In this document: piece after piece, positions 3,136 to 29,197 of the stretch
Position numbering within the stretch: position 1 is the stretch's first letter
Layout of the letters: every line of letters starts with the position of its first letter
Assembly: GCA_043228905.1 (NCBI GenBank)
Contig: JBHGNT010000005.1
Span: 4,030,001 to 4,094,000 of the forward strand
Length of the DNA: 64,000 nucleotides
Source: Azolla caroliniana
Lineage: Eukaryota > Plantae > Polypodiophyta
Direction: 5' to 3'
The notes under the pieces: generated by a model
The model's input: only the letters and a program-made list of their open reading frames with translations
Told to the model about the DNA's origin: nothing
Databases searched by the model: none
Made by a program: the position numbers and the translations under genes

Positions 3136-3216
3136 CATAAACCCATTATCTAAGCGCATGTATGCATGTATAAAGCGTATGTATGTATAAAGCGTATGTA
3201 TGTATGTATAAGCGTG

Positions 3217-3560
3217 GTGTCTAACTACTACCAAATATTAAAGAGGCCAAGTGAGGGAATCGCGGAGAGGGACGGTGCAGGTCGCACCGCTGATGGCGCG
3301 TTCGATCTCCACCGTCCAAGATGGATGTGGAATAGGCGCGAAAAAGCGCGCCACATAAAAAGGGAGCCCGGCTCATACAAAATGGAGCCCGACTCATTAA
3401 AGAAGGGCTCCACTTTGTGAAAGGGAGCCCTTCTCATTCATGTTCAGGGAAGTATAAAAACCCATTCAGGCAAAATGGAGCCCGACTCATTAAAGAATGG
3501 CTCCATTTTGTCAAAAGGGAGCCCTTCTCATTCATGTTCAAGGAAGTATAAAAACCCATT
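3217..3560 (+). repeat. Left TIR plus subterminal GGAGCCC motif array, including short palindromes and a ~106-bp tandem duplication
   Basis: First ~110 bp match the reverse complement of 9690-9800; then GGAGCCCG(G/A)CTC motifs and the palindrome GAAGGGCTCC-N12-GGAGCCCTTC near 3402-3433. Confidence 0.85.
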
Positions 3561-3594
3561 TCCTGTCATTTTCTGTCATTTTTTGTCATTCGTG

Positions 3595-3693
3595 GGTTTG
3601 AGGGTTTAGGGTTTTTGAGCGAGGCGCACCACCTGTCTGCGAGCACTCGTTGCAAACATCTCCGGTGAGGCAGCGAGCACCTGCAGTCCAGAG
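3595..3693 (+). promoter_or_regulatory. Putative promoter / 5'UTR exon of the element's Ulp1 gene
   Basis: Telo-box-like GGGTTTAGGGTTT (~3602-3614), a GC-richer stretch, then donor GAG|GTAGGC at 3693/3694 pairing with acceptor TTTTGTACAG at 4739 directly before ATG 4740. Confidence 0.45.
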
Positions 3694-3784
3694 GTAGGCA
3701 TCATATTCCTTCTATTAGGTTTTGGTTTTTATTAGGTATCATATTCTTTCTATTAGGTTTAGGGTTGCTTCTAATAGGTACCAT

Positions 3785-4535
3785 AAATGTGTGTATGATT
3801 AAATACATGTATGTGTGTATGATTCAATACATTTGTGTGTGTATGTGTATGATTAAATACATGTATGTGTGTGTATGATTGAATACATTTCTGTGTGTGT
3901 ATGATTGAATACATTTGTGTGTGTGATGGGTTTAGGGTTACATGTATGTGTGTATTTAAGATCTTCTTTGGGCTGTGAATGTGTGTGTTTGTTGTATGAT
4001 TGAATACATTTATTTGGGAATGTGCGTGTATACATGTGTATGATTGAATACATGTATGTGTGTATGATTGAATACATTTGTGTGTGTGATGGTTGAATAC
4101 ATGTATGTGTGTATTTAAGATCTTCTTTGGGCTGTGAATGTGTGTGTTTGTTGTATGATTGAATACATTTATTTGGGAATGTGTGTGTATACATGTGTAT
4201 GATTGAATACATTTCTGTGTGTGTATGATTGAATACATTTGTGTGTGTGATAGTTGAATACATGTATGTGTGTATTTAAGATCTTCTTTGGGCTGTGAAT
4301 GTGTGTGTTTGTTGTATGATGAATACATTTATTTGGGAATGTGTGTGTATACATGTGTATGATTGAATACATGTATTTGTGTATTTTAGATCTTCCATGG
4401 GCTGCGAATGTGTGTGCATGTGTATGATTGAATACATGTTTGTGTGTATTTAAGATCTTCTATAGGCTGTGATTTAATACATGTATCTGTGCATTTAAGA
4501 TCTCCCATGGGCTGTGTATGATTGAATACATGTTT
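3785..4535 (+). repeat. Minisatellite in the putative first intron of the element gene
   Basis: About 18 copies of (GT)nATGATTGAATACAT arranged in ~160-bp higher-order units containing TTTAAGATCTTCTTTGGGCTGTGAATG. Confidence 0.95.
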
Positions 4536-4999
4536 GATTTTGATTTTGCCAACATTTGAATGTCATTTAAATGCCAACATTTGAATGCTTGAATTTGCCC
4601 ATGTGATTCATGCATTATTGGGCTCTTTTTTATGCCCACATTTGAATGTCAAATCTAAAATCTTGTATACATTCTTTGCGTTTTTTCTCCCTAAATAATA
4701 GTAATGTAATGAATGCCTTTCTAAAAATGTTTTGTACAGATGGCTAGTCGGTCCAAGATCTTCATAGACTTTGATGCAGATTGGGGTGAAACAATACCCT
4801 ATGAAGGGAGGTATGGCATGAATCATTTCTCTACTTTATATTGTGTATAAATAATAATGTTTGTGTGCTAACTTGAATGTTGGTTTAGGGTTTATGTAAG
4901 AAAGGGTGTTAGGTGCCCCAAATCCAATGATACGGAGGCTGAAAACATCATTACTCAAGACTCGAGCATGGATACGAACCCCATGCATGACGTGGGTCC

Positions 5000-5475
5000 G
5001 CTCGTGACTAACTGCTACCAAATATTAAAGAGGGCAAGTGAGGGAATCGCGGAGAGGGACGGTGCAGGTCACATCGCTGATGGCGCGTTCGATCTCCACC
5101 GTCCAAGATGGATAAAAAGCTGACAACGTCTGTCAGAAGGAGCCCGACTCTGCCACAGGGAGCCCGACTCTGTCAAAAAGGAGCCCCGCTGTCAGACAGC
5201 CTATGCAAGAGGGAGCCCGACTCTGTCAGAAGGAGCCCCGCTGTCAGATCACATCAGTAAGAAGGAGCCCGACTCTGTCAAAAGGAGCCCGACTCTGTAG
5301 CAACAAACATCAAAAACTCCACAAAATTGTAAGTGTACAACAAATATTTTCCATGAAACTGACCATAAAATTTCTCAAAAAAAACGTAAAGGTTCAAATA
5401 ACAAGTCTTACATAAAATATTAAAATGTCAGATGTTGACAACCCTAAATTGAAATATACATATTAAGATTATGGC
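5000..5475 (-). repeat. Internal inverted copy of the element's right end (9310-9804)
   Basis: Reverse complement of 9310-9804 apart from ~3 small differences and one missing ~20-bp GGAGCCCGACTCTG unit; starts at GCTCGTGACTAAC, the inferred right terminus. Confidence 0.95.
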
Positions 5476-5923
5476 CCCCGAGGCAGTATTACATGGATGC
5501 CATGTGCCTTCTGTAAATGGGCCTCCATGTCCGCTTTTTTTCGAAACCATCTCCCCTCTTTTCTACACGAATCTCCCACAATACAGGTGCGACATTTGAT
5601 ACCTGTTGAGTCTCTTCCACACTTGAAGAGGGACATAGGGTCCACTACAACAATGGTGTCACATTTGCATTAGAAAAACCCAAAATATGCTTACATCAAT
5701 AATCAAGCATATTTTGGGTTTTTCTAATGCAAATGTGACACCATTGTTGTAGTGGACCCTATGTCCCTCTTCAAGTGTGGAAGAGACTCAACAGGTATCA
5801 AATGTCGCACCTGTATTGTGGGAGATTCGTGTAGAAAAGAGGGGAGATGGTTTCGAAAAAAAACGGACATGGAGGCCCATTTACAGAAGGCACATGGCAT
5901 CCATGTAATACTGCCTCGGGGGC
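5474..5923. repeat. Fold-back palindrome: 219-bp arms (5474-5692 / 5705-5923) with a 12-nt loop
   Basis: Arms are reverse complements with one mismatch that I could see; loop ACATCAATAATC. Confidence 0.97.
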
Positions 5924-7409
5924 TAAAGATAGACGAAGAAGAGCAATCGACCTCCATGAGGAGTACAGCCACATCATTCTTCAGCGAATACGAAAGACAA
6001 CGATCAATAAATCGTTTTTTGGATCCGGAGCTCAAGTATAATAGATCACGCCAATCACACATGAGAAAGTTGAGGACAAGAGCAATAAAAATCTTCAAAG
6101 CCACTCCGGACTCACTTCGAACATGCAAGGAGGCTGATTTCATTGCTCAATTCGTTAGCCAACAAATGGCCAGGTATGACGAGGGAAAGGAGCATAGGAT
6201 GGCAAAAGTGAGGTTGAAGATTGCGGATGCGTCTAAAGATTATGTAAGTATGGTTTATGATTTTGTGTGCATCTTATGTGAGTTTAAAACTTATGATTAT
6301 GTGTGAATCTTATGTATGAATTGTAGTGTAAGAGTCATGGAATTCCCATACCAAAGGATGAGGCACATGTCGAGATCGATGGTGGTCAAGACCAACTGTC
6401 AGAATCGACAATGCAACAAGCAAGGAGGCCGAAAATCCAAATCCGCAGGAAAGAAGTAGACCCATGTAATTCGGAGTTCATTACATCATCTGACACAGAT
6501 GAGGATGCAGACATTGGGATTGTCTTTGTTGGTCCAGGGACAATCTCGAAAACATGGGATAACTCTGCAAGAAATAAGTTCACCAGGTATGTTGTTATGC
6601 TGGGGGCATGATATCAATAGTTAACATCATGTTTGTTTAGTAGTTACTAATCTAGCCTAATAAACAGGTATCAGGTGGCATGCCGACGACTGGATGTAGC
6701 GGTCTTCTTGTTGGAGATACAACTATGTTCGTTGATCACAGTAGGGGAGATGGCATCCACATGGATGATAACCCTCTTCCATTTATGGATGGAGTACTCG
6801 CTGCCCCCCGAGATCAACAAGCGGTTTCATATTGTGGATCCGCTATGGGTACAACTAGAAGGCCAAGGCGATAAGGTCAAAGACGTACTCACTCGTGTTC
6901 CTGAAAGGGATTATGTCTTCATTCCAATATTGAACGCAGGGCATTGGGTGCTTTGGTTGAAGATGCGACAAACTCCTACAGGTCTCGATGCCAAGGTGAG
7001 GAGCCCAATTATATTTTGTGATCCACTAAATATTCATCTGACTACCAGGGTGCGGACATTGGGTGATTTGGCTATACGACATATCTCGAGTCGGACACAT
7101 GACCATTGCATCATCAACAACGGGCAATTCCATGAATTGCGTATCCCAACCCAACCTAATGGGACCGATTGTGGGTATTACGTGATGCAAACTATTCGCA
7201 TGTTGGTCGAGGAGTTGATTCAAGGATTTGAGTCCGATCAATTTGTAAGTATTTATGAGATTTGAATTTGAGCATTTGTTTTTGTTTTTGTTGATGGCAT
7301 CTTCAATTGTAGGGTAAGGAGCAATGGTTTGGATTCGAAGACGTGGAGCTCCTTCGGAAAATCATGGCAAAATGGGCACGAAGGACTTTGGGCATATGAC
7401 TACGTGGAG

Positions 7410-7808
7410 TCATTTTGCAATGGTTGTATATGACTCAATGTAAATCATTTTGGTTGTATATGAATCTCATTTTGGTTGTAGATGACTCAATGTAAATCAT
7501 TTTGGCTGTAGATGACTCAATGTAAATCATTTTGGTTGTATATGACTCAATGTAAATCATTTTGGTTGTATATGAATCTCATCTTGGTTGAATATGAATC
7601 AATTTTTGAATCTCATTTTGGTTGTATATGAATCTCATCTTGGTTGAATATGAATCAATTTTTGAATCGCATTTTGGTTGTATATGAATCTCATCTTGGT
7701 TGAATATGAATCAATTTTTGAATCGCATTTTGGTTGTATATGAATCTCATTTTGGTTGTGTATGAATCTCATTTTGGTTGTATATGAAAATCATTTTGGT
7801 TGTATATT
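7410..7808 (+). repeat. T-rich tandem array downstream of the Ulp1 stop codon
   Basis: About 15 copies of CATTTTGGTTGTATATGA(ATCT/CTCAATGTAAAT), units 22-34 bp. Confidence 0.95.
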
Positions 7809-7944
7809 GGAATTGTTTTGGGTGTCAAAAGAATAAGACTAATAGCTTATTGACAAGTAGTGAAGGCAATGGTTTTTGAGAAAGGCCAATAAAGAGTAAG
7901 TATATAGAAAGAGTGCTTCGGTCCTTACGTAAAGAATACATAGT

Positions 7945-8178
7945 AAGACATAATGTCAATCCATTTCAAAGACATAATAAGACTCAATGTCAATCCAATT
8001 CAAAGACATAATAAGACATAATAAGACTCAATGTCATTCCATTTCAAAGACATAAATAAGACTCAATGTCAATCCATTTCAAAGACATAAATAAGACTCA
8101 ATGTCAATCCATTTCAAAGACATAAATAAGACTCAATGTCAATCCATTTCAAAGACATAATAAGACTCAATGTCAATC
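7945..8178 (+). repeat. A-rich ~35-bp tandem array
   Basis: 6-7 copies of AAGACTCAATGTCAATCCATTTCAAAGACATAA(AT). Confidence 0.95.
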
Positions 8179-8208
8179 TTATGACTAAGGTTAAAAATCG
8201 GGAGTGCC

Positions 8209-9316
8209 ATGACTAAGGTTGATTGGGCTTTGATCTTGCATCATGCCTATGCACTCCGAGATCTTGGGAAAGTGGCACATGTTCAACCCTACCTGCATGG
8301 TGAACCAGGATCTCCCGCCATACAACCATTTATCTTGATACTTCAAGATCAATGGATGTTGGAAATGTGTGAGCGGTTGACCCTAAACAACTCTTGGGCA
8401 ATCGACTCGACATTTAAAACAAACCAATTTGGGCTACCATTATATGCCGCAGTTGCCCCCAATGCCATGGGAATTGGGATCCCATTATGGTACATGCTTT
8501 GTAGTTCTGATAAGGGGTCAAACCATGAGCAAGTGGCATTAGAAACTTGTTTGAAAGTCATATTCGCAAGGATGCCCACGGTGAGGCCAAATGCGATAGT
8601 GATCGATAAATGTTGGACGTCATATAATGCCATAACTAATGTGGTTGCAACAGACCGTCAATCTTGGATTGTTGTAAATGGGCAACGGTCCCAAACACAT
8701 TTGTGGTTTGACATGTGTGTGGAGGAAACTCTGGCCCAAGTTTGGTAGAATGTTCAACTATGGACATGTTGACACTACCAATATTGTGGAAAGACATTGG
8801 CAGTTTATCAAGTATACTGCCTTGAGGGGAAGAATAAACCGATCAATTACCGACCTTCTACATGTCTTAATCGGGGACAGTGAAACTGGCACTTGCATAG
8901 GAGGAACGGTAATAGAGTGGTACAAGCAACGACAAGAAATATGTGAGAGTGGTCGGTTTGCACCTCGTGCGAATTGTAGGGATCAAAGGTCTCGACTTAA
9001 AGAAGCAGAGAGAATATTGGAAAGGTATGTCGAAAATAGACATCTCGCAAGAACTTATTGGCAGCAACAATAGACATCTCGTGCAACAATAGACATCTCG
9101 CAAGAACTTATTGGCAGCTCCCCAAACACTTCCAAATCCCACTCCGGAAAATTACAAAGAGGTGCTAGTCGGGCTAGGAGGAGATTGCCATTGGTTGACC
9201 ATGAGAAGGTTCGGTGTTTGCGTTGCGATGGCTTGACCTTGACTTCAAGGGACTCAAATGTTACATGTTGTAAAAATTGTGGTTGCATCTTGCAATCATC
9301 CCGACATGAGCCATAA
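8209..9316 (+). pseudogene. MULE (Mutator) DDE transposase remnant in three pieces (about 8209-8697, 8720-9035, 9080-9316)
   Basis: WAIDSTFKTNQFGLPLY (first Asp), PNAIVIDK (second Asp), DTTNIVERHWQFIK (Glu motif); CxxH region and N-terminus absent; last piece ends VRCLRCDG...CCKNCGCILQSSRHEP* (TAA 9314-9316). Confidence 0.85.
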
Positions 9317-9479
9317 TCTTAATATGTATATTTCAATTTAGGGTTGTCAACATCTGACATTTTAATATTTTATGTAAGACTTGTTATTTGAACCTTTACG
9401 TTTTTTTGAGAAATTTTATGGTCAGTTTCATGGAAAATATTTGTTGTACACTTACAATTTTGTGGAGTTTTTGATGTTT

Positions 9480-9804
9480 GTTGCTACAGAGTCGGGCTCC
9501 TTTTGACAGAGTCGGGCTCCTTCTTACTGATGTGATCTGACAGCAGGGCTCCTTCTGACAGAGTCGGGCTCCCTCTTGCATAGGCTGTCTGACAGCGGGG
9601 CTCCTTTTTGACAGAGTCGGGCTCCCTGTGGCAGAGTCGGGCTCCTTTTCGCAGAGTCGGGCTCCTTCTGACAGACGTTGTCAGCTTTTTATCCATCTTG
9701 GGCGGTGGAGATCGAACGCGCCATCAGCGATGTGACCTGCACCGTCCCTCTCCGCGATTCCCTCACTTGCCCTCTTTAATATTTGGTAGCAGTTAGTCAC
9801 GAGC
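9480..9804 (-). repeat. Right TIR and subterminal array
   Basis: 8 copies of GGAGCCC(GACTCTG / CGCTGTC) on the minus strand, mostly ~20 bp apart, followed by the ~110-bp TIR. Confidence 0.9.
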
Positions 9805-9939
9805 ATGTATAAGCGTCTATGTATTTGTATGTATGAATACAGTATATATGTATATGTATACATATATAAGCGGCGAGCGCGTGTGTACTTTTTATTCATT
9901 CATTTCATTCATGAGAAGAAAGCAGGGAGAAGGAGAAGG

Positions 9940-9986
<47 letters not shown>

Positions 9987-10226
9987 GAAAGGTAGCACAA
10001 AGACGAAGGTTTCTGCATGCCTCCAGACGAAGAAGATCGCCATGGCCACAGCTACGATCACCAACACGATCATCGTCTGTTTCCACATGAAGAGGAGATG
10101 AACGATTTAAATCTCATTGATCCTCTCAGAAGGCCCACCAAGGCTCTGAAATTAGGCCTTAGAGCTCGATCTTATCATCGCCATATCCTTTCAGATCCTT
10201 CTAAGGTCTGGCACAGGAGAGTTCGC

Positions 10227-13200
10227 ATGGCTGCTTCCTTTGGAAACATCCTACGCATGGTCCTTCTTCTTCTCCTCCTCATCGCCATCGCTGTGGCTTG
10301 CTTTACGCTGCCCATTGATAAGGTATTTCGCTCTTCTTCTTCTTCCTCTTCTTGTAGGTCTATGAAAACGTTTGATCTGGACTTTTGATGCACGTGTCCA
10401 TGAAACATGTTAGATTGGATGTTTATGGTGAATTAACATCAGTACTAAAGAAAATTCTAAAGGAAGCCTTTTCTCTCTCATTTCTTACTTTTACTCATTT
10501 CTTTTCTTTTTCTTCCTCTTCATCCTCATGGACATTGTTATCATCGGCATATTCTTCTTCTTCTTCAAGCGTTAGAGATTTGTTTCTTGTAAGGTATGAT
10601 CAAGGCCTATTAACCGTTTGACCAAGCCTTTGGAGGTGTCATTCCATGCTAAACAACAAGAAGTGCTAGAGGAAAAAGGAAACGTTTTCTATTCATTGAA
10701 GTTGTTATTGGATTGTATCTTTATGCTGGTCAGCACCAAAGGAATTCTAGAAGGTAACTAGATTGCTTCTGGTTTACCTTCTTCTCTTTTGGAGAACCAG
10801 AGAACCAAAGGAAGCCTTTCATACTCTAGCTCTGAAGGGTACTCTGCGGACTAGAACTTGACACCAAGTTTACCTAATGCCTACCTTTACTAGCATAGGA
10901 GCTTTGTGGATTTCAAGGCCTTCGCTGGAATGCAGTAGTATCTGTAGTAACTGGAGGATTGATTGATTGGATTGCTGTGATAGAATTTTGCATTTAGTCT
11001 GCATTCCGCAATCTGTAAAAGACACATCTGTGTTTTCTTTATGGAGTTAGTGTGATACTTCTTTACCTGATGCTACCAAGTAACAGCTTATGATCTTTGT
11101 GGGGATCAAGGCCTTTGGCAGGATGCGGTAGTATTTGGAAGGATCAATTGATCATTATTTGTGGTATTACATCAGCCTTTTAGTCCCAGCTCATGTGAGA
11201 CTAGTAATAGCAGAGTTATGCTGTCATGCTGATTGGTGAAGTGGGTTATGGCATGCATTGGATGGGTACATCAATGTAATAATAATGAAATGGATAAAGC
11301 AATGTATTTGAGAAGATCCAATTGCCAGGGGTTACTGAAAGATTACCATAGAGTGTAATGCTAATGTACCTCTTCAAACAAGGAGGTTGCTTCCCTCAAG
11401 CACATCTTTCACTTTCTGATCATTGTGCTCCATTATAGGTAGAGATTTTATATTATCTTTATCAAGAGCACTTTAACTAGTTCTCATTCTTAATGTTTTC
11501 AAGAACACTTTAATCTTTAAACTGTTCCAATTCTTGTCTTACGATTATAGTTTCATTTTTCTTCATGCTTTATGTCCATAACTAGGGTAATAATTTGACT
11601 TGCCAAAACTTTTCAATTTTTTCTTCAAGTTCTTTCTGTGAACTGACTTTCCCTCGCCAGATTTGTTCAGCTTTTCATTTTTGAAGAAGGTTTATCTTTG
11701 TATTTCTGACTTTTCTTTCTTTTTCAAGGTGTTGAGACGCTTGAACAATCCAACCCATATGGGACAATACGAAATATGTGTATATATATATGGGGAGTAC
11801 TCTGAAATAACCCCCAAATTTTCTTTACATTCCTAAATGCGCCTGACTTTTTGTTATTCCCCCAAATATTTTGGTCAACCCTGTGTTGAGGATTTATATG
11901 CTCCATTCATCCTCATTTCACCTCTTTTGGTGGTCCACCAGTGGTATTCAGGGAAATGAAGACATTAGGTGCATTTGAGAAAATAAAGAAAAAATTGCAG
12001 GGCTATTTCAGTTTTTTCCTTCAAAATGTAATGAATTTGAAGACAAGTAAAGTATGCAATGAAGGCATGGTAGAGGATGAATGCCACTTGCTCTTCACAT
12101 GCTCGACATATAGTGCAATTCGTTCAAGATATGCTGACGTACTAAGAGGGAGTGATAACTTAAGGGCCATACTTAAGACACCACCTAGAAGGTTGAGCTC
12201 ATATGTGTAATGCTTTATTCACGCATAGAGACTTTGTGCTTCAATGTATGAATACCCCTTCTTAGGAAGGAGGCACATATCAAGAACACAAGTATACTCT
12301 GGTCGCACAAGTCAAAACTGGCCTCTTTATGGACGATTAAAAAATCTAATTCTAATTCTAATTCTAATATATAAAAGCAAACCTATGTAATATATCTTAT
12401 TACTATGCAGATCTTGAATGGATTCTTGATTTGGATTCACGTAAATCTGGGATCATGGGGTCCTGTTGCATTGTAAGATCCCTTCCTTAAAGTTCTTTGA
12501 GAAACAGCGAGTTTTATGAGTGCTAGTTCATCTATCAACTGCATATTTTTATTTACTACAGAAAGAATTAATATATCAACTGTTCCCTTATAGTGAAATC
12601 TTGCATTCGTTCTTTACAAGAATTAAGATAATCAAGTGGTTGTTTATGAAGTATATATGTTTTACTGAATGACTAGCATGCTGTAATCCAATTTTGCAGG
12701 GCCCTTGCTTACATACCTTTGACTATTTTGGCAGTTCCAGCATCAATCCTTACGGTATGCTTTTACCATTCATTGCTGTTAATGATAAAGTGCTGTTCGG
12801 TAAAAAGTTAGAGAGAATAGTAGTACTAACAAATTATCTTTACAACACGATGTATTAGTGCAGGCAATTTCTTCCTCCAAATTTGTTTGCTAAAACATCT
12901 CTTATGATGATAATATACTTAGGATATGGATGCAGGCTTTAGCAAACAACACTTAGATGACGTTTATAATTCACCTTAGAAATGATGCAAGTCAATTCAC
13001 AGAAATTCCTGAAAACCCTCAACATGTATAGCTAGAAGCTAGCCATATTTGTATTTCGACCTGTTGCATAGGTTAATGTTTCTGTCTTCCTTCTTCCTCT
13101 CTCTATGTCTTGGTGAGTTTGTAAGACCAAGGTCATAATTTGCACACTTCTGCACTGGTCTGGAGACATTCGATCATAACATTAGCAGGAGGTCAATTAG

Positions 13201-16716: not shown

Positions 16717-18443
16717 AGTACACTGACTGGGCTAGTATGTAAATATCACTTCTCGATGCCCGTGTACATGTATCACTATATAGATTACATAGTCACGACA
16801 GTCAAGAAGGCTGTGCAAGTAATGAGACCCTTTTATTTCATCAAGAATTGAACATGCTATTAAAGAACATGATTTGCTTGATGAAGCCATTGTAAAACTT
16901 GAACTTGAAAAGGATTTTCCTCTCGAGCCTTTAATCAAGTCATTTCTTGAGCCTTGCCGATCTTCTCTCTGAAGAAAAAGCTTTTATGAAATTGTTAGAA
17001 TTCCTATTGTTTAGTATGGTACATGCAGTCTTTATTTTTGTGACCACTGATAATAATAACAACAATGGTAAGCAACATTCATTCATCCAGAATTTTCTTG
17101 GTGTAATCACAAGGTTTGTGCCCATTCAATAAAGTGCACTAATGAAGAAAAAGATTTGGGGTATGATCTCTTATTGAGGTATTTGAAGATTTAAAATGCA
17201 TTTAGAACAATAGAGGGATTAAGATGAAATCCTCATTAAGATGAACTTAGTGGATAGCCACTGAGTCAGATGGCAACGAATCTTACTATTATTTTCAACC
17301 AGGTTAAAAATGAGGCTTACATTACAAATTAAATTGAATTTGAGGATGTCCAAGTGTCCCCTCTTGAAGGTCTTTCACATTTATTTTCCTAATCTTTTGG
17401 TCCTGAAGAATTTTTTCCCTTCCATTTTCCATCGTGAACTAATTTATGGTTTTGACATTTCCACTAATTCAAAATAAATGCACGGAATTTGACACATGTT
17501 CTTTGAGTAAGCCAAATATTCATCCAATAGTATTGAAATGAAAGGCCTTTAAAGTTGAATAAACAATGGTTTCATCTTTGCAATCCTAAACAAAAAAAAA
17601 AGGATACATGTGTTACTTTGACAAACTAAAATGTTTATTTAACATTGAAATAAAAAGCGGTCAGATAATGTTTTGGTATATTCAGGAAATACAGAAGGCT
17701 AAGATCTTTGCCATCCTGAAACGAAACTAAAACTTTGCTTCAATTTTACAAGATTCAAAATCAGTTTAGGTATTCTATGTCACCTCCAGACCTGCGAAGA
17801 AAAGAAATTTGAAATATGAAACGGAAAGGTTAAAAACTTTCATGGCTTCATCATGTCAATTTCAAGAATTTATGGATTGCAAACAATTTGTCCAAAATAA
17901 TTAGTTTGGTTCGTAGCTGCTGAAATGAAACACAACAACAGAGTAACTCAGAAAGTAAGATACACTACAATCATGGACTAATAACGGATGCAATATTAAC
18001 AAAATGAGACAATGGCTATGTATTGGCCATGTTCAACACTGCAGTCCTCATAGGAATCAATGAATTGCCTCATGAATAGTTCCAGTATTTATATGATATC
18101 CATACACCTCCCTTTAGATGCTACCCCCCCACAGAATTAATTGTAACTATCTTTCTATGTTAGTTCCAACTGGAAAACACTTGCCCATTCATTAAATTGA
18201 AGAAAGAGGCTACCATCACCAATAACCGGAAATCAAGCAATATAAAGTTTGAAAATTTGTCTCTTGTGGGCAAAATAATGTTTCTCCATACAATACATAT
18301 GCACATTAATCATATAGCTAACTCTGATCTAGCAGATAGTTCTGCCGGAAAGAGCTTGAAACACTATGTGACAACAATAAGCATTTCCCCACAGCTATAA
18401 AAATCACACATGGTCAGAGAGGCATTTAAACTTCGAGGAATCG

Positions 18444-18740
18444 CCACTCAAACTTCAAGGGAGGTCCTTCAATGTAAATAAAAATAAACATTTCCCCACT
18501 CAAACTTGAAGGGAGGTGCTTCAATGTGAATAAAAATAAGCATTTCCCCTCTCAAACTTGAAGGGAGGTGCTTCAATCTGAATAAACATTAAGCATTTCT
18601 CCACTCAAACTTCATGGGCGGTGCTTCAATCTGAATAAACATACGCATTTCTCCATTCAAACTTCAAGGGAGGTGCTTTAATCTGTATAAACATAAGCAT
18701 TTCTCCACTCAAACTTCAAGGGAGTTGCTTCAATCTGAAT
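18444..18740 (+). repeat. 52-bp tandem repeat, about 6 copies
   Basis: CCACTCAAACTT(C/G)AAGGGAGGTGCTTCAAT recurs at 18444, 18496, ~18549, 18601, ~18653, 18705. Confidence 0.9.
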
Positions 18741-19099
18741 GGCCATTGGAACCTGCAAGGCTCTGGGATGCAAGGGGGTTGAAAGCCATCGCTTAGATGG
18801 AATCTCTAACTAGCAGGAATCCAACTGCTGCCAAGAATCATAGCATGGGAAAGATCTACTCATTGCAAGATAACTCCCCTAGTTTATAGATTGTTCAGAG
18901 AGGGGTGGGGCTTCAGTCTGAATGCCAATTGGCACCTGATCCAAAGATGTGTTATATCATCCAAGGAATGTTAGCATGGTGTACTCCTTCCTGGAAGTGA
19001 CTAGATTGAATGTGAGTGTAAAGCCCAACCACTCTTTTGGAAGAGTCACTTGTTCTCCTAAAGACTTATGGTCAAAACATTATAACAATGCCCTTCCTT

Positions 19100-24789: not shown

Positions 24790-27700
24790 TTATTTTACAT
24801 GGAAGGGATATTGAGGAGAAGAGAAGATGGAGAAGGAATCGGAGAATAACGGGATATCCTTGGAATAATGTAGTGGGTCGGCCTCGCCAGTATCAAACTT
24901 ACGCCCTTTATTAATTAATTCGACATTGAAGTGATCCCCCCATATGTCATACAAACTCATATTGTAGTCATGATCCCTTATCGATGTCGATGTCGATGTC
25001 AATGTCGAGCTAGCAAAGCTACCTAAATCTTGTGCATCATTACTATGATTCTCATTAACATCCTCCAATGCTCCATTGTAAGGTTTATCGATGGTCAATA
25101 TTGTGTCATGTGAAGTGGACCTTGTTGATATGATGGCAGAATTGGTGATTCTGGGTTTCGTTCCCGGAGCTCGTGCATACGGAGCTATGGCTGATGTAGG
25201 GATCACATTTTTTGATGAAACTGTCACTAATGTTGGGTTTCTTTTAATCCTCGGTATCGCTCTCACCTCCGATGATGACTTTGTTGGCTTCAAAGAGTCA
25301 TCATTCAGAGCACTCGATCTTGGTTTGGTCAACGATTGCTCCACATCACTAGATTTTGTTGTCTTCAGTGATTCATCATCCAGAATACTCGATAGCGGTT
25401 GGATCAATGATTGCTTCAGATCACTAGACTTCGTTGTCTTCAGTGATTCATCATTCAGAGTACCCAATTTTGGTTTAATCAATGATTCCTCCAAATCACT
25501 AGTATGCTTGTTAGATGTCAATGTGCTCTCTGAAGATGCTGTAGATAGATTCATGTCACTATGATCATTGTCACCACCATCATCCAAGGATCGATGTTTA
25601 CTAATATCAGGATCAGCATATTTAAATGGAAAAACCGATTCCTTATTTTTATTAGTCATTTGTACATCATCTAGCGTATTCTTAACTTCGTGCCTTAATG
25701 CTAGTGTAGCAGCAACAGCAGTACCTGGATTAAAAATACTTGCCTTCACCAAAGGACTTATTGGCCTAACAGTACCAATAGTGTTGATACTCTGTCTAAT
25801 CAATGGTGAAGATGGGGTCGACCGAGGAGAATGGCAACTACTATCACTTGAATTATTCTCTATATTACTGTGATCTAGAGGATTAATGCCTATACCAATA
25901 TTCTTCCTCTTTTTTGTCCTTTTCCCAATTTTATAACTATCCTTTTCTTTCTCTAATGATTTCCGAGGTGAAGAAGAATTAGACGATGATGATTGCACAG
26001 GCTCTAGTAGTTTATCCGATGTATTTAGCAGAAGCATGCTGGATTTCCCTTTTCTTGAATGTGAAATCTTCAGTCGTGATGACGAATTACCGCCTTGTGG
26101 ATGATTTGACATCAAAGAAGTCGACTTAGGATAATGAGAATGATCAGGATTAGGATGATTCATCGTGTGAGTCCCTTTCTTAATGTCCGGCATGATCATG
26201 CCATCAACACCCATGTCTTGCTTAGTAGAGCTTTTGGATATTACTGCTCCCATCAATATGGCTCTTGTAGTCCATACCTTAATTGCATTCAAATGTTTTA
26301 TACCAGCTAAATATATGTAAGCTATTGCTGAATGTACAACCTCAAGGGCACCTTTTGTGAAGCTCAAGAAGTTGATACAATCTTGCTTTTTACCTTCACC
26401 TTGTGTGTAATCAAGATCAATGCTCACATAGATTGACGGTCTTTTGTGCACCATTTTCGGCCTTGATCTGTCATTTTGGGAGAATTTGGACAAGCCATTG
26501 ATGTTGGATAATGTCCATTCATTCACACTTGCATTCGTCACTACAGAATCATCCTGTTTGAGCATTTTTCCAAACACAAAGAGCACTAGAAAGAGTGCCA
26601 CTAGACACACTTGCAGGAATATTCTCTTGACAGTTGAAAGCAGTTGTGCCATCTCACAAAACCAAATCATGTCATCAGGAATCCGTGCCTTGAGGGTAAC
26701 TGAAAGGACGTCCCCCTTCGTGGTTACTAGCTGAAGATCACCATGGGCATCAAAGAGTTTATCAAAATCCGGTTGATATGAGACTAGAAGCTTAGCAGAT
26801 TCTCCTGGTGCAAGGCCGAATCCATGGAAAGAATCTATCCGGAATCCATGAGATCCAGTGAGCATCAAGGAAGCTACTTGAACGGACGAATTCCCAAGGT
26901 TTTTTGCAATAAATCCTTTGCTAGTGCGCCGATTATGACATACCCCATACGCGCCTTCCTCGTCGAGAAATGTCTCAATCTTCTCTTTCAATGTCTTCTT
27001 CAAAAAAGAAGGCAAAGACCTTGAATCCACTTCCACTTCAAGTGTGTCTACTAGCTCGTTTCCATCAAAGAACTTCAGCCCTAATTCACTAGAGCTGGCT
27101 ACAATGGCAGTACCTTCTCCTTCAATCCTCATCCATTCAATCCCAGTTAAGTTGTTCACTAGAATAACATTGCTCCGCCACAACACATTATATTCCTCTT
27201 CATATGGGTGAAAAACTATGGGACCTATGGCACCTGTAGAGTTAGGTGGCAACACAATCTTTGTCATATCATGATCATCTCCTTCAATGCTGAAAACTAT
27301 GCCCTTATGCTTAGATTGCACCCATTCCTTCACAACTGGAGACGTTCCAACCTCCTTGGGATCATGGTGTGTTGTACATCCCAGCATTTCATCGTTTACA
27401 ATCGGATGTGTTTTATTACAGGGAATTACGCTGATATTCACATTGGAAACATTTCTCTTTTGAGCTATAGAATTTACAAACAATTGTATGGAGATTGGCA
27501 TACCCCTTGGATTTCGGACTTGGATCCATTGCTTAGATTTTTGCCCGGCCAGAGTATCTGGAAACGTGAACACATTGGAGGCCCCAAGAATGGACAATCG
27601 GCTTGGAATAACCGTATTAACTGTCCAAGATGCCACCGGATGCATTAGTGGATCTGATAATTTCCCCAGGCCATTCTGCATGATCAAGCACATAATCATT

Positions 27701-28793
27701 GTTGTTTTTTAGATATAAATGCCATCTATCAAGGAAAAACCATTGTCAAGGAATTAATTATCTTGATCTTCTCAAGCACTCCAAAATGCAAATGTTTGAA
27801 AAGGGAGGCTTTCGATTTTTTCCATACTAGAGTTTCCCATATTGAGGATTGAACTAACTAAAACCAAACAAAAACAGAACTGGTTAAAAAATATATACTT
27901 ACATGGTTTGACACACGAAGGGCAATAGAAGGACGGAAATGTGGTTCATCATCAAGAGGGCAAAGAGGAACATGCTGAAGTTCATGGACCATATCAACAG
28001 TAGTAGCATCATCATTCTTCTTTTTCTTGAGAATCTCATGGGACTGTGGTTTCACACCAGCACCTTCCATACCAATCGATATCGGCCCGGCACTCGTATG
28101 AATCACAAGTAAACCTTGTACAATATCTGCAACCTTTGGCATGAATATCACATGTACTGCCAACATCCCTCTTGGTTGTAAGAGTGTCTTCTCAAATCCA
28201 ATTACATGGAAATTACTAGGGTTCGTGCTATAAACTTGGAAGACACAGAGACTAGTGTCAGCCATCCATGTGTTCACAATTGTCAATGACCTCCGAGACT
28301 GTGAGGAGACTTCTTGTTTCCCCCATGTTAAGCTCACATTAGCAGTGACCATCAATGTACTGGACCCTCCTAATTCTTCTAAGCCAACCACATGCTCTTG
28401 CATAGTACTATTAGGTCCCATGTCTGGCATCATTGACACATGGTTTGTATCATGGCAAGCATTCAAATGATCTGGTTTCAAACTTGATACTTCGGCCACA
28501 GCCTGGGTTGTCTGCTTCACATCTTCATGGCCATAGGTCTCGAATGGCTTTGATTGCTTCTTGTTGTCATCGTTGTTTAATGATGTCGAAGAACCAAATG
28601 GCACATCAATATTGTCATGAATATATGTATCATGAGTCTTTGCCATCGATAATACTGCAAGAGAATTGACAAAGCAAATAACAAAGAAAAAGTTCGAATG
28701 GATGGCTCTATTCTTCCTCTTCGTGTAATTGCTCCTCCTAATCTGACTTATATATATAAGACCCATCAACAAGCAAATAGTTGCTACATCCAT
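24790..28793 (-). CDS. TMEM131-like (DUF3651) membrane protein, ~1260 aa; exons 28793-27903 and 27675-24790
   Basis: Two long ORFs joined in frame by a 227-nt intron (CAT|GTAAGT...TGCAG|AAT); hydrophobic N-terminus, Ig-like segments (LTWG...LTIVN...FMP...HTSAG; WIQVRNP; NNLTGIEW), one TM helix, Ser-rich tail with ARAPG and YDIWGDHF. Confidence 0.8.
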
Positions 28794-29197
28794 GTATATA
28801 TATTTACAGAAAAACAGTTTAATGAGCAAAAAAGGGGGGAGAGGGGGCACTAATTTCTTGTGAATAAATGGGCTAATTTTTGCTTGATTTAGCCCAGATT
28901 TTAATCTAATGAAGATTTAATTTGACAAGGAACCCTGTCTAGTTTCCCACAAATAAGCCACGACAGAATCAGACTGGTTTTTAATTGAAGAGGAAGAAGA
29001 TAGAGATTAAGACCCAATATTTGTAAGTACCTGAGGGAGAAGAAGATGAAGAAGATGATGAAAAGAAGAGACCCATGAACTAAAGTCACCATACACAAAA
29101 AGTTAAAAAGCAATATCTGATCATATGCATATTATGATTAACAAAGGAATCATTGAGAGAGGGAGAAGCAGAGAGGGAGCGTTGTATGGACGCAAAC

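Follow-up and report, generated by a model that had tools for sequence, protein, structure and literature searches.

A young, rearranged Ulp1-carrying Mutator-like element in the fern Azolla caroliniana, probably a by-product of error-prone transposon repair with latent silencing potential

The window analysed here is a stretch of 64,000 nucleotides (nt) from the fern Azolla caroliniana (NCBI GenBank assembly GCA_043228905.1, contig JBHGNT010000005.1, positions 4,030,001 to 4,094,000 of the forward strand), and all coordinates below are positions within it. It contains a copy of a Mutator-like element (MULE) with two genes, a transposase and an accessory Ulp1 gene. Inside exon 2 of the Ulp1 gene lies a block of 705 base pairs (bp), at 5000-5704, that is made up of two inverted pieces of the element itself: a complete copy of its right end, and a segment of intron 2 and exon 3 that faces its direct counterpart across a short loop.

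Sibling copies of the element were found through word searches with the zinc-finger exon of the Ulp1 gene and with an open reading frame (ORF) spanning the terminal inverted repeat (TIR). All returns were proteins from metagenome assemblies in ENA, and the contigs of those proteins gave four related loci, referred to below as L001 to L004. The features of the element, including its target-site duplication (TSD) and the 3′ untranslated region (UTR) of the transposase gene, are as follows.

3213-9804, plus strand: whole element, 6,592 bp, a non-autonomous Ulp1-carrying Mutator-like element with TIRs, TSD, and Peptidase_C48 and MULE domains.
3204-3212, unstranded: left copy of the 9-bp TSD, ATGTATAAG, abutting the left tip.
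3213-3326, plus strand: left TIR, identical in L001 and L003.
3327-3693, plus strand: left subterminal region with GGAGCCCGACTC-type motifs, a 94-bp duplication with two TATAAAA boxes, and a putative leader exon.
3694-4739, plus strand: putative leader intron with tandem arrays (159-bp period and sub-periods; Tandem Repeats Finder), its AG end just ahead of the ATG.
4740-4810, plus strand: Ulp1 exon 1, 71 nt, with the start codon and followed by GT at 4811 as donor; unchanged in L003, and conserved in L002 as well.
4889-4999, plus strand: Ulp1 exon 2, truncated, its last 26 nt and GTGAGT donor gone.
5000-5475, minus strand: inverted right-end copy, the reverse complement of 9310-9804, with the last 7 coding nt of the transposase, the 3′ UTR, the subterminal motif array and the complete TIR tip.
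5474-5703, minus strand: inverted hairpin arm plus 11 loop bases, 230 nt in all (58 nt of intron 2 and 172 nt of the zinc-finger exon).
5693-5704, unstranded: hairpin loop, 12 nt, consisting of 11 nt of inverted ancestral intron and one extra C (5704).
5705-5923, plus strand: direct hairpin arm, in which the last part of intron 2 (5705-5752) is followed by 171 nt from the start of exon 3, with its C2H2-like zinc finger; L001, L002 and L003 are colinear with it.
5753-6243, 6327-6586, 6668-7244 and 7313-7399, plus strand: Ulp1 exons 3-6, with GT-AG borders, open and in phase, ending in a TGA stop at 7397-7399.
7421-8178, unstranded: intergenic tandem arrays, with 30/22/56-bp units at 7421-7807 and 35-bp units at 7938-8178.
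8188-9316, plus strand: transposase remnant in three blocks (8188-8701, 8702-9038 and 9081-9316) with 42 nt of filler at 9039-9080, as aligned to L004 with blastn.
9310-9804, plus strand: right end, with the transposase stop codon, 3′ UTR, a subterminal array of six full motif copies, and the right TIR.
9805-9813, unstranded: right copy of the TSD, the same 9-mer ATGTATAAG, abutting the right tip.

The TIRs are 95% complementary across 110 nt (3217-3326 versus 9691-9800), the TSD has the canonical Mutator length of 9 bp, and two of the sibling copies, L001 and L003, have the same terminal bases after unrelated flanks. A TIR probe of 45 nt has exactly three sites in the 64-kb window (3231, 5018 and, reversed, 9742), where none is expected. 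With TIRs, a 9-bp TSD and a MULE-domain transposase all present, the element belongs among the MULEs, and the Peptidase_C48 gene within its TIRs places it with those that carry Ulp1. Angiosperm elements of that kind, such as Kaonashi/KI-MULEs of Arabidopsis and CUMULE of melon, have a Peptidase_C48 gene beside the transposase; the family described here differs from them in its fern host, in the N-terminal C2H2-like zinc finger of its Ulp1 gene, and in the arrangement of its two genes, which share a strand and each have motif arrays ahead of them. The flanks of the element (3152-3215 and 9814-9850), like the left flanks of L001 and L003, are microsatellites of GTAT/ATAC type, which may reflect a target preference or coincidence. 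No Rfam family was matched anywhere in the window.

Much of the non-coding interior is repetitive. The left subterminal region, with its 94-bp tandem, is near-identical in L001 and L003, and the intergenic arrays recur in L003 and L004. The large arrays within the element (3870-4372, of 159-bp units; 7421-7807; 7938-8178) differ in copy number among siblings, and this variation accounts for the left part being only 86% identical to L001 and L003. The promoter and leader exon proposed within 3327-3693 are putative, as are the splice sites of the leader intron.

The Ulp1 gene model was checked by translating each exon separately. Exon 5 contains a match to Pfam Peptidase_C48 (PF02902; E = 1.2e-8; 6675-7250, plus strand). 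At the break, the reading frame of exon 2 enters the inverted TIR, continues there for 40 codons and stops at 5121-5123. Since exons 3-6 are still open and in phase, the rearrangement is, on the predicted gene model, the sole lesion of the gene. Two siblings have suffered differently: at L003:5045 and L001:3289 a stretch of 529 bp is absent (the equivalent of 6825-7353 in the window), which removes most of the Ulp1 catalytic exon, so that the accessory gene is decaying independently in separate copies.

The transposase remnant retains a match to the Pfam MULE domain (PF10551; E = 2e-9; 8209-8748, plus strand) and is colinear at about 98% with an ORF of 959 amino acids (aa) in L004. That locus (L004:1559-4438, minus strand) encodes an intact single-exon MULE transposase, with an array of the GGAGCCCGACT motif upstream to about 4945; the same motif is found at both ends of the element, and the array is deleted from the window copy. 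A preliminary description of the locus, drawn from its letters alone, had held both genes to be broken, and so they are: Ulp1 is cut 26 nt before its exon-2 donor, and the transposase has lost, relative to L004, its promoter array with about 370 N-terminal codons (about 1.6 kb) and two further blocks, of 212 bp (with a frameshift) and about 0.47 kb. The three deletion junctions carry, respectively, a 6-nt filler, a 2-nt microhomology (8701/8702) and a 42-nt filler copied from just downstream (9039-9080), and the three deletions are predicted to make the transposase of this copy non-functional. The L004 transposase has 35 sequences in its own 90% cluster, and its closest annotated relatives are Adiantum proteins with 37-41% identity. 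The family itself is, to judge by its sequences, young and recently active.

In and beside the block, the antisense copy of the transposase 3′ UTR and right TIR and the 219-bp hairpin of the zinc-finger exon (5474-5923) are both present as first described. The right-end copy begins at the exact TIR tip base that is set by the 9-bp TSD, and its 476 nt form one arm of a long-range inverted repeat within the element. Compared with the real right end it shows two substitutions (5102/9702 and 5239/9545), lacks the 20-nt repeat unit 9648-9667 and has one extra A in a homopolymer. A 2-nt GC overlap at 5474-5475 fuses it to the intron-2/zinc-finger piece (5474-5703), which in reverse is 100% identical to L001 2162-2391 and L003 3918-4147 and which reaches 11 nt beyond the direct arm. 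The arms 5474-5692 and 5705-5923 pair over 219 nt around the 12-nt loop, their sole mismatch being 5534 C versus 5863 A, and the RNA fold of the hairpin has an energy of -440 kcal/mol (z = -52 against shuffles). At the mismatch it is the A of the direct arm that is derived: the inverted arm, read on the other strand, and L001, L002 and L003 all have G.

The siblings also show the state of the gene from which the rearrangement started. In L001, L002 and L003 the block is absent and the equivalents of 4999 and 5705 are separated by 63 nt, namely the final 26 nt of exon 2, the GTGAGT donor and 31 nt of intron 2. The absence of the block from three siblings makes it a derived state, that is, an insertion, in the course of which 52 of the 63 nt were lost; the other 11 are kept only in inverted form, within the loop. 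The left end and exons 1-2 match L003 exactly or almost exactly, with 100% identity over 4690-4999, and identity is 99.55% over 5705-6824. Across about 706 duplicated bp there are three substitutions (0.4%), a divergence that fits one recent event. The idea that L003 might be the same locus before its rearrangement was rejected: the matching flank is only ~57 nt long and microsatellite-like, and L003 is without 6825-7353.

Perfect palindromes with short loops are a known artefact of long-read sequencing, and the inverted block could in principle be a chimeric or fold-back read error carried into the consensus; the junctions were found in no independent assembly searched. Six ORFs from the junctions and hairpin, looked up exactly, were absent from a collection of 15 billion proteins, and a word search with the ORF spanning 4999/5000 returned 13 matches, all to the TIR half only, although for this fern the collection holds only metagenome scraps and the absence is weak evidence. 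The details of the block point away from such an error, which we regard as highly improbable. The block joins two segments that do not lie side by side, and is no plain fold-back of its neighbourhood; it differs from its sources by three substitutions, the 20-nt unit and 1 nt; one of its junctions falls exactly at the transposase cleavage site; and at 5534/5863 it is the inverted arm that has the family-consensus base, and that arm was therefore not copied from the present direct arm.

How the block came about can be inferred in outline. Aberrant transposition or break repair would have swapped the 63 nt at the exon-2/intron-2 border for two pieces, a complete right end, attached precisely where the transposase cuts, and an intron-2/zinc-finger segment from just past the break. 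The features to be accounted for are a blunt join exactly at the tip of the right TIR, the 2-nt microhomology where two non-adjacent inverted fragments meet, fold-back breakpoints just 11 nt apart in ancestral coordinates, and the loss of 52 nt of target. Under one route, a sibling or sister copy would have contributed its right terminus, by way of a deletion derivative or of one-ended or alternative transposition; this terminus would have inserted inversely into exon 2, followed by end-joining or collapse of the resulting palindrome. Under the other, a break would have been repaired through serial template switches with capture of a transposase-cut end. Two simpler mechanisms fail: clean fold-back priming at the loop was rejected as the sole mechanism, as it would leave the 3′ end unpaired and as the junction, with its one added C, has the look of end-joining; and simple nested insertion of a deletion derivative cannot stand alone, a second terminus and TSD being absent. 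The 4999/5000 joint falls on the very tip of the TIR, which is what strand transfer would give; there is no second terminus, and the matching TSD copy for the 5000 joint would fall in the lost 63 nt. The element had been through error-prone repair before, as the three other junction scars, with their microhomology or local filler, indicate.

Internal-deletion derivatives of MuDR and Ac arise by interrupted gap repair and contain filler DNA, and their junctions, like those seen here, show 2-nt microhomology or short, locally copied filler. By analogy the block of 705 bp may be seen as inverted filler of unusual size. Ordinary derivatives of this kind lose sequence, whereas the fern element acquired some as well, in the form of a complete inverted terminus and a fold-back. 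A better-fitting comparison is offered by the maize composite insertions of Ac/Ds, p1-ww-id1 and p1-ww-id4, which formed by alternative transposition and re-replication (bioRxiv 10.1101/2020.01.07.897926). These composites combine inverted fractured fragments, a transposase-made joint at a terminus, an end-joined internal fusion and a retained transposon promoter, a layout that the fern locus seems to share; in the fern locus the end-joining is visible in the 2-nt GC overlap at 5474/5475 and the 1-nt insertion at the fold-back. The likeness has its limits. Ac and Ds are hAT elements and the fern element is Mutator-like; the two termini of the composites lie at a new site between copies of an 8-bp TSD, and megabase-scale duplications accompany them, whereas the fern element has one extra terminus, inside the element itself, and no second TSD; and their arms are about 2 kb long, against 219 and 476 bp here. 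Both routes proposed above would nevertheless belong to the class documented for these insertions, which on structural analogy appear to be a closer match than Mu killer, the maize locus to which we return below.

The extra terminus might also have consequences for transposition. The interval 5000-9804 is bounded by two inverted right-end tips with about 476 bp of identical TIR sequence and could form a new transposition substrate, which we rate as very unlikely; that the additional end exposes the locus to breakage and to alternative transposition seems no more probable. Both tips are complete, each with five to six full copies of the subterminal motif, and Ac/Ds ends that lie near one another are documented to undergo alternative transposition. 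Yet no TSD pairs 5000 with 9804, the nine bases ahead of 5000 differing from 9805-9813, and the searches described above found no other copy of the junctions. A mobilisable composite would not exclude an origin as a latent by-product and is compatible with it.

The silencing potential of the locus lies in what a transcript from its left end would contain. As the preliminary description stated, the element keeps its left end and its first coding exons, here exons 1-2 up to the break; the TATA-containing subterminal region is likewise kept, and the promoter is apparently intact. Loss of the exon-2 splice donor blocks normal splicing out of exon 2 and thereby favours read-through. A sense transcript would then carry 476 nt antisense to the transposase 3′ UTR, subterminal array and TIR, followed by the 219-bp stem. 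If the locus is transcribed, Dicer-like cleavage of the stem would be expected to yield small interfering RNAs (siRNAs) against the Ulp1 exon of the family, and the antisense part could anneal to transposase mRNAs or to the right end of the element itself. Of the 21-mers of the stem, 79-89% perfectly match L001, L002 and L003, which makes targeting in trans possible in sequence terms; for the terminal 110 nt of the inverted TIR, 35 of 90 21-mers match left ends, that of the element itself included. To judge by its sequence, the locus holds every sequence prerequisite of a source of hairpin and antisense RNA. Transcription, small RNAs and any silencing by the locus are possibilities that we infer from this layout.

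The preliminary description had compared the locus with Mu killer of maize. That parallel stands in so far as both are non-autonomous derivatives of Mutator-superfamily elements that have lost internal sequence, gained an additional copy of a TIR and duplicated some of their own sequence in inverted orientation; it does not extend to the part of the element that was duplicated. Mu killer duplicates the promoter TIR adjacent to mudrA and about 1.3 kb of the 5′ transposase gene, and its transcripts are proposed to supply the fold-back or antisense RNA that silences the family, antisense transcripts being associated with effective silencing (PMC3440606). The fern duplication does not span a promoter TIR and 5′ transposase sequence: its hairpin consists of Ulp1 intron 2 and exon 3, and the TIR that it duplicates lies 3′ of the transposase stop codon. 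Mu killer is driven by promoters of a flanking gene or by unknown internal ones, whereas the only evident driver in the fern element is its own left-end promoter, and silencing by Mu killer is genetically proven, whereas the fern locus is a candidate.

An active locus of the Mu killer type, in which the Ulp1 promoter reads through the antisense right end and the hairpin and so gives rise to 21-24-nt siRNAs, is unlikely on balance, and we place a similarly low chance on its silencing other copies in trans, through post-transcriptional knock-down of Ulp1 and/or transposase mRNA together with RNA-directed methylation of TIRs. Besides the sequence prerequisites and the read-through that the lost donor would force, such activity draws support from maize, where effective Mu killer silencing was associated with antisense transcripts and where, in another case, double-stranded RNA apparently came from the promoter of the transposon itself, with the hairpin blocking splicing. 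In that case, the Ac/Ds composites, double-stranded RNA gave 24-nt siRNAs from TIR and subterminal sequence and 21-22-nt siRNAs from transcribed regions, introns were retained, silencing was heritable, and one allele was probably driven by its own promoter (bioRxiv 10.1101/2020.01.07.897926). Ferns also possess DCL, AGO and Pol IV/V genes (PMC5569507). Against activity stand the nature of the hairpin, an exon of the accessory gene and not the promoter and 5′ region of the transposase as in Mu killer; the restriction of the structure to this locus in the junction searches made; and the persistence in the family of an intact transposase ORF and of near-identical siblings, which means that there is no sign of a long shutdown. 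That the locus in fact acts in nature as the 'killer' of its own Ulp1-carrying Mutator family in the fern, driven by the accessory-gene promoter and silencing intact copies in trans, is on the sequence distinctly unlikely; it is better seen as a well-formed candidate of a known kind than as a demonstrated 'killer'.

At the other extreme, the locus may be an inert scar, heterochromatic and without transcription by RNA polymerase II (Pol II), any small RNAs from it being of the generic, repeat-associated sort and the family going unaffected. This is quite possible, if somewhat short of an even chance. Both genes are dead, the element bears four repair scars, and no further junction copies came to light in the protein-collection searches. 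The rearrangement is however very young, its promoter region is identical to that of siblings, and plants usually dice perfect inverted repeats once these are transcribed.

Taking these lines together, we favour the view, with a probability of roughly 0.6, that the locus is a young, dead, rearranged Mutator-like copy, a latent by-product of error-prone transposon repair that has silencing potential. Several considerations weigh against it. Firstly, the target of the hairpin would be Ulp1, an accessory gene that transposition may or may not need, and it is the TIR at the 3′ end of the transposase gene, not one at its promoter, that has been duplicated. Secondly, ATTAAA hexamers at 5024 and 5419, in an AT-rich antisense UTR, could stop transcripts ahead of the hairpin, and the promoter and the inverted copy have about 110 nt of TIR in common, so that the promoter could silence itself. 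Thirdly, many ferns outside the Polypodiales are without a prominent class of 24-nt siRNAs, which is strong mainly within that order (PMC5569507). Finally, sequence spanning the junctions was not found in any other public assembly searched, and in the absence of a second junction copy the structure rests on a single assembly.

The surroundings of the element contain signs of host genes. Just past its right end, on the plus strand (9939-10388), a GA microsatellite is followed by an ORF (10017-10388) that has no Pfam match and probably ends as an exon near 10322, with a possible next exon at about 12412-12475 (plus strand). The start of this putative gene would lie 130-420 bp past the right end and on the same strand, so that the element may sit in its promoter. 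A host gene is marked some 15 kb away from the element, at 24790-28850 on the minus strand, by two long ORFs (969 and 330 aa) with matches to TMEM131-like N-terminal and Ig-like domains. A tandem array of about eight 52-bp units at 18389-18799 is unrelated to the element.

To our knowledge, the first recognition of an active DNA transposon by its host, through a rearranged copy that makes double-stranded RNA, is known from only a few cases, all in maize. The centres of those maize loci could not be sequenced (PMC3440606; bioRxiv 10.1101/2020.01.07.897926), whereas the fern locus is a fully sequenced, base-resolved case of such a rearrangement, in which every junction can be read, and in a family whose transposase is still intact. 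It would be a locus of a known kind in a new lineage and with a different target, an accessory gene and a 3′ end. Should it prove silent, it is a record of how often faulty repair gives rise to structures of this sort that have no effect. Should it prove active, it would extend the route of the 'self-inflicted killer' to ferns and to an accessory-gene target, and it would stand as the earliest case beyond maize of a locus that initiates transposon silencing in this way, in a lineage that differs from angiosperms in its small-RNA pathways.

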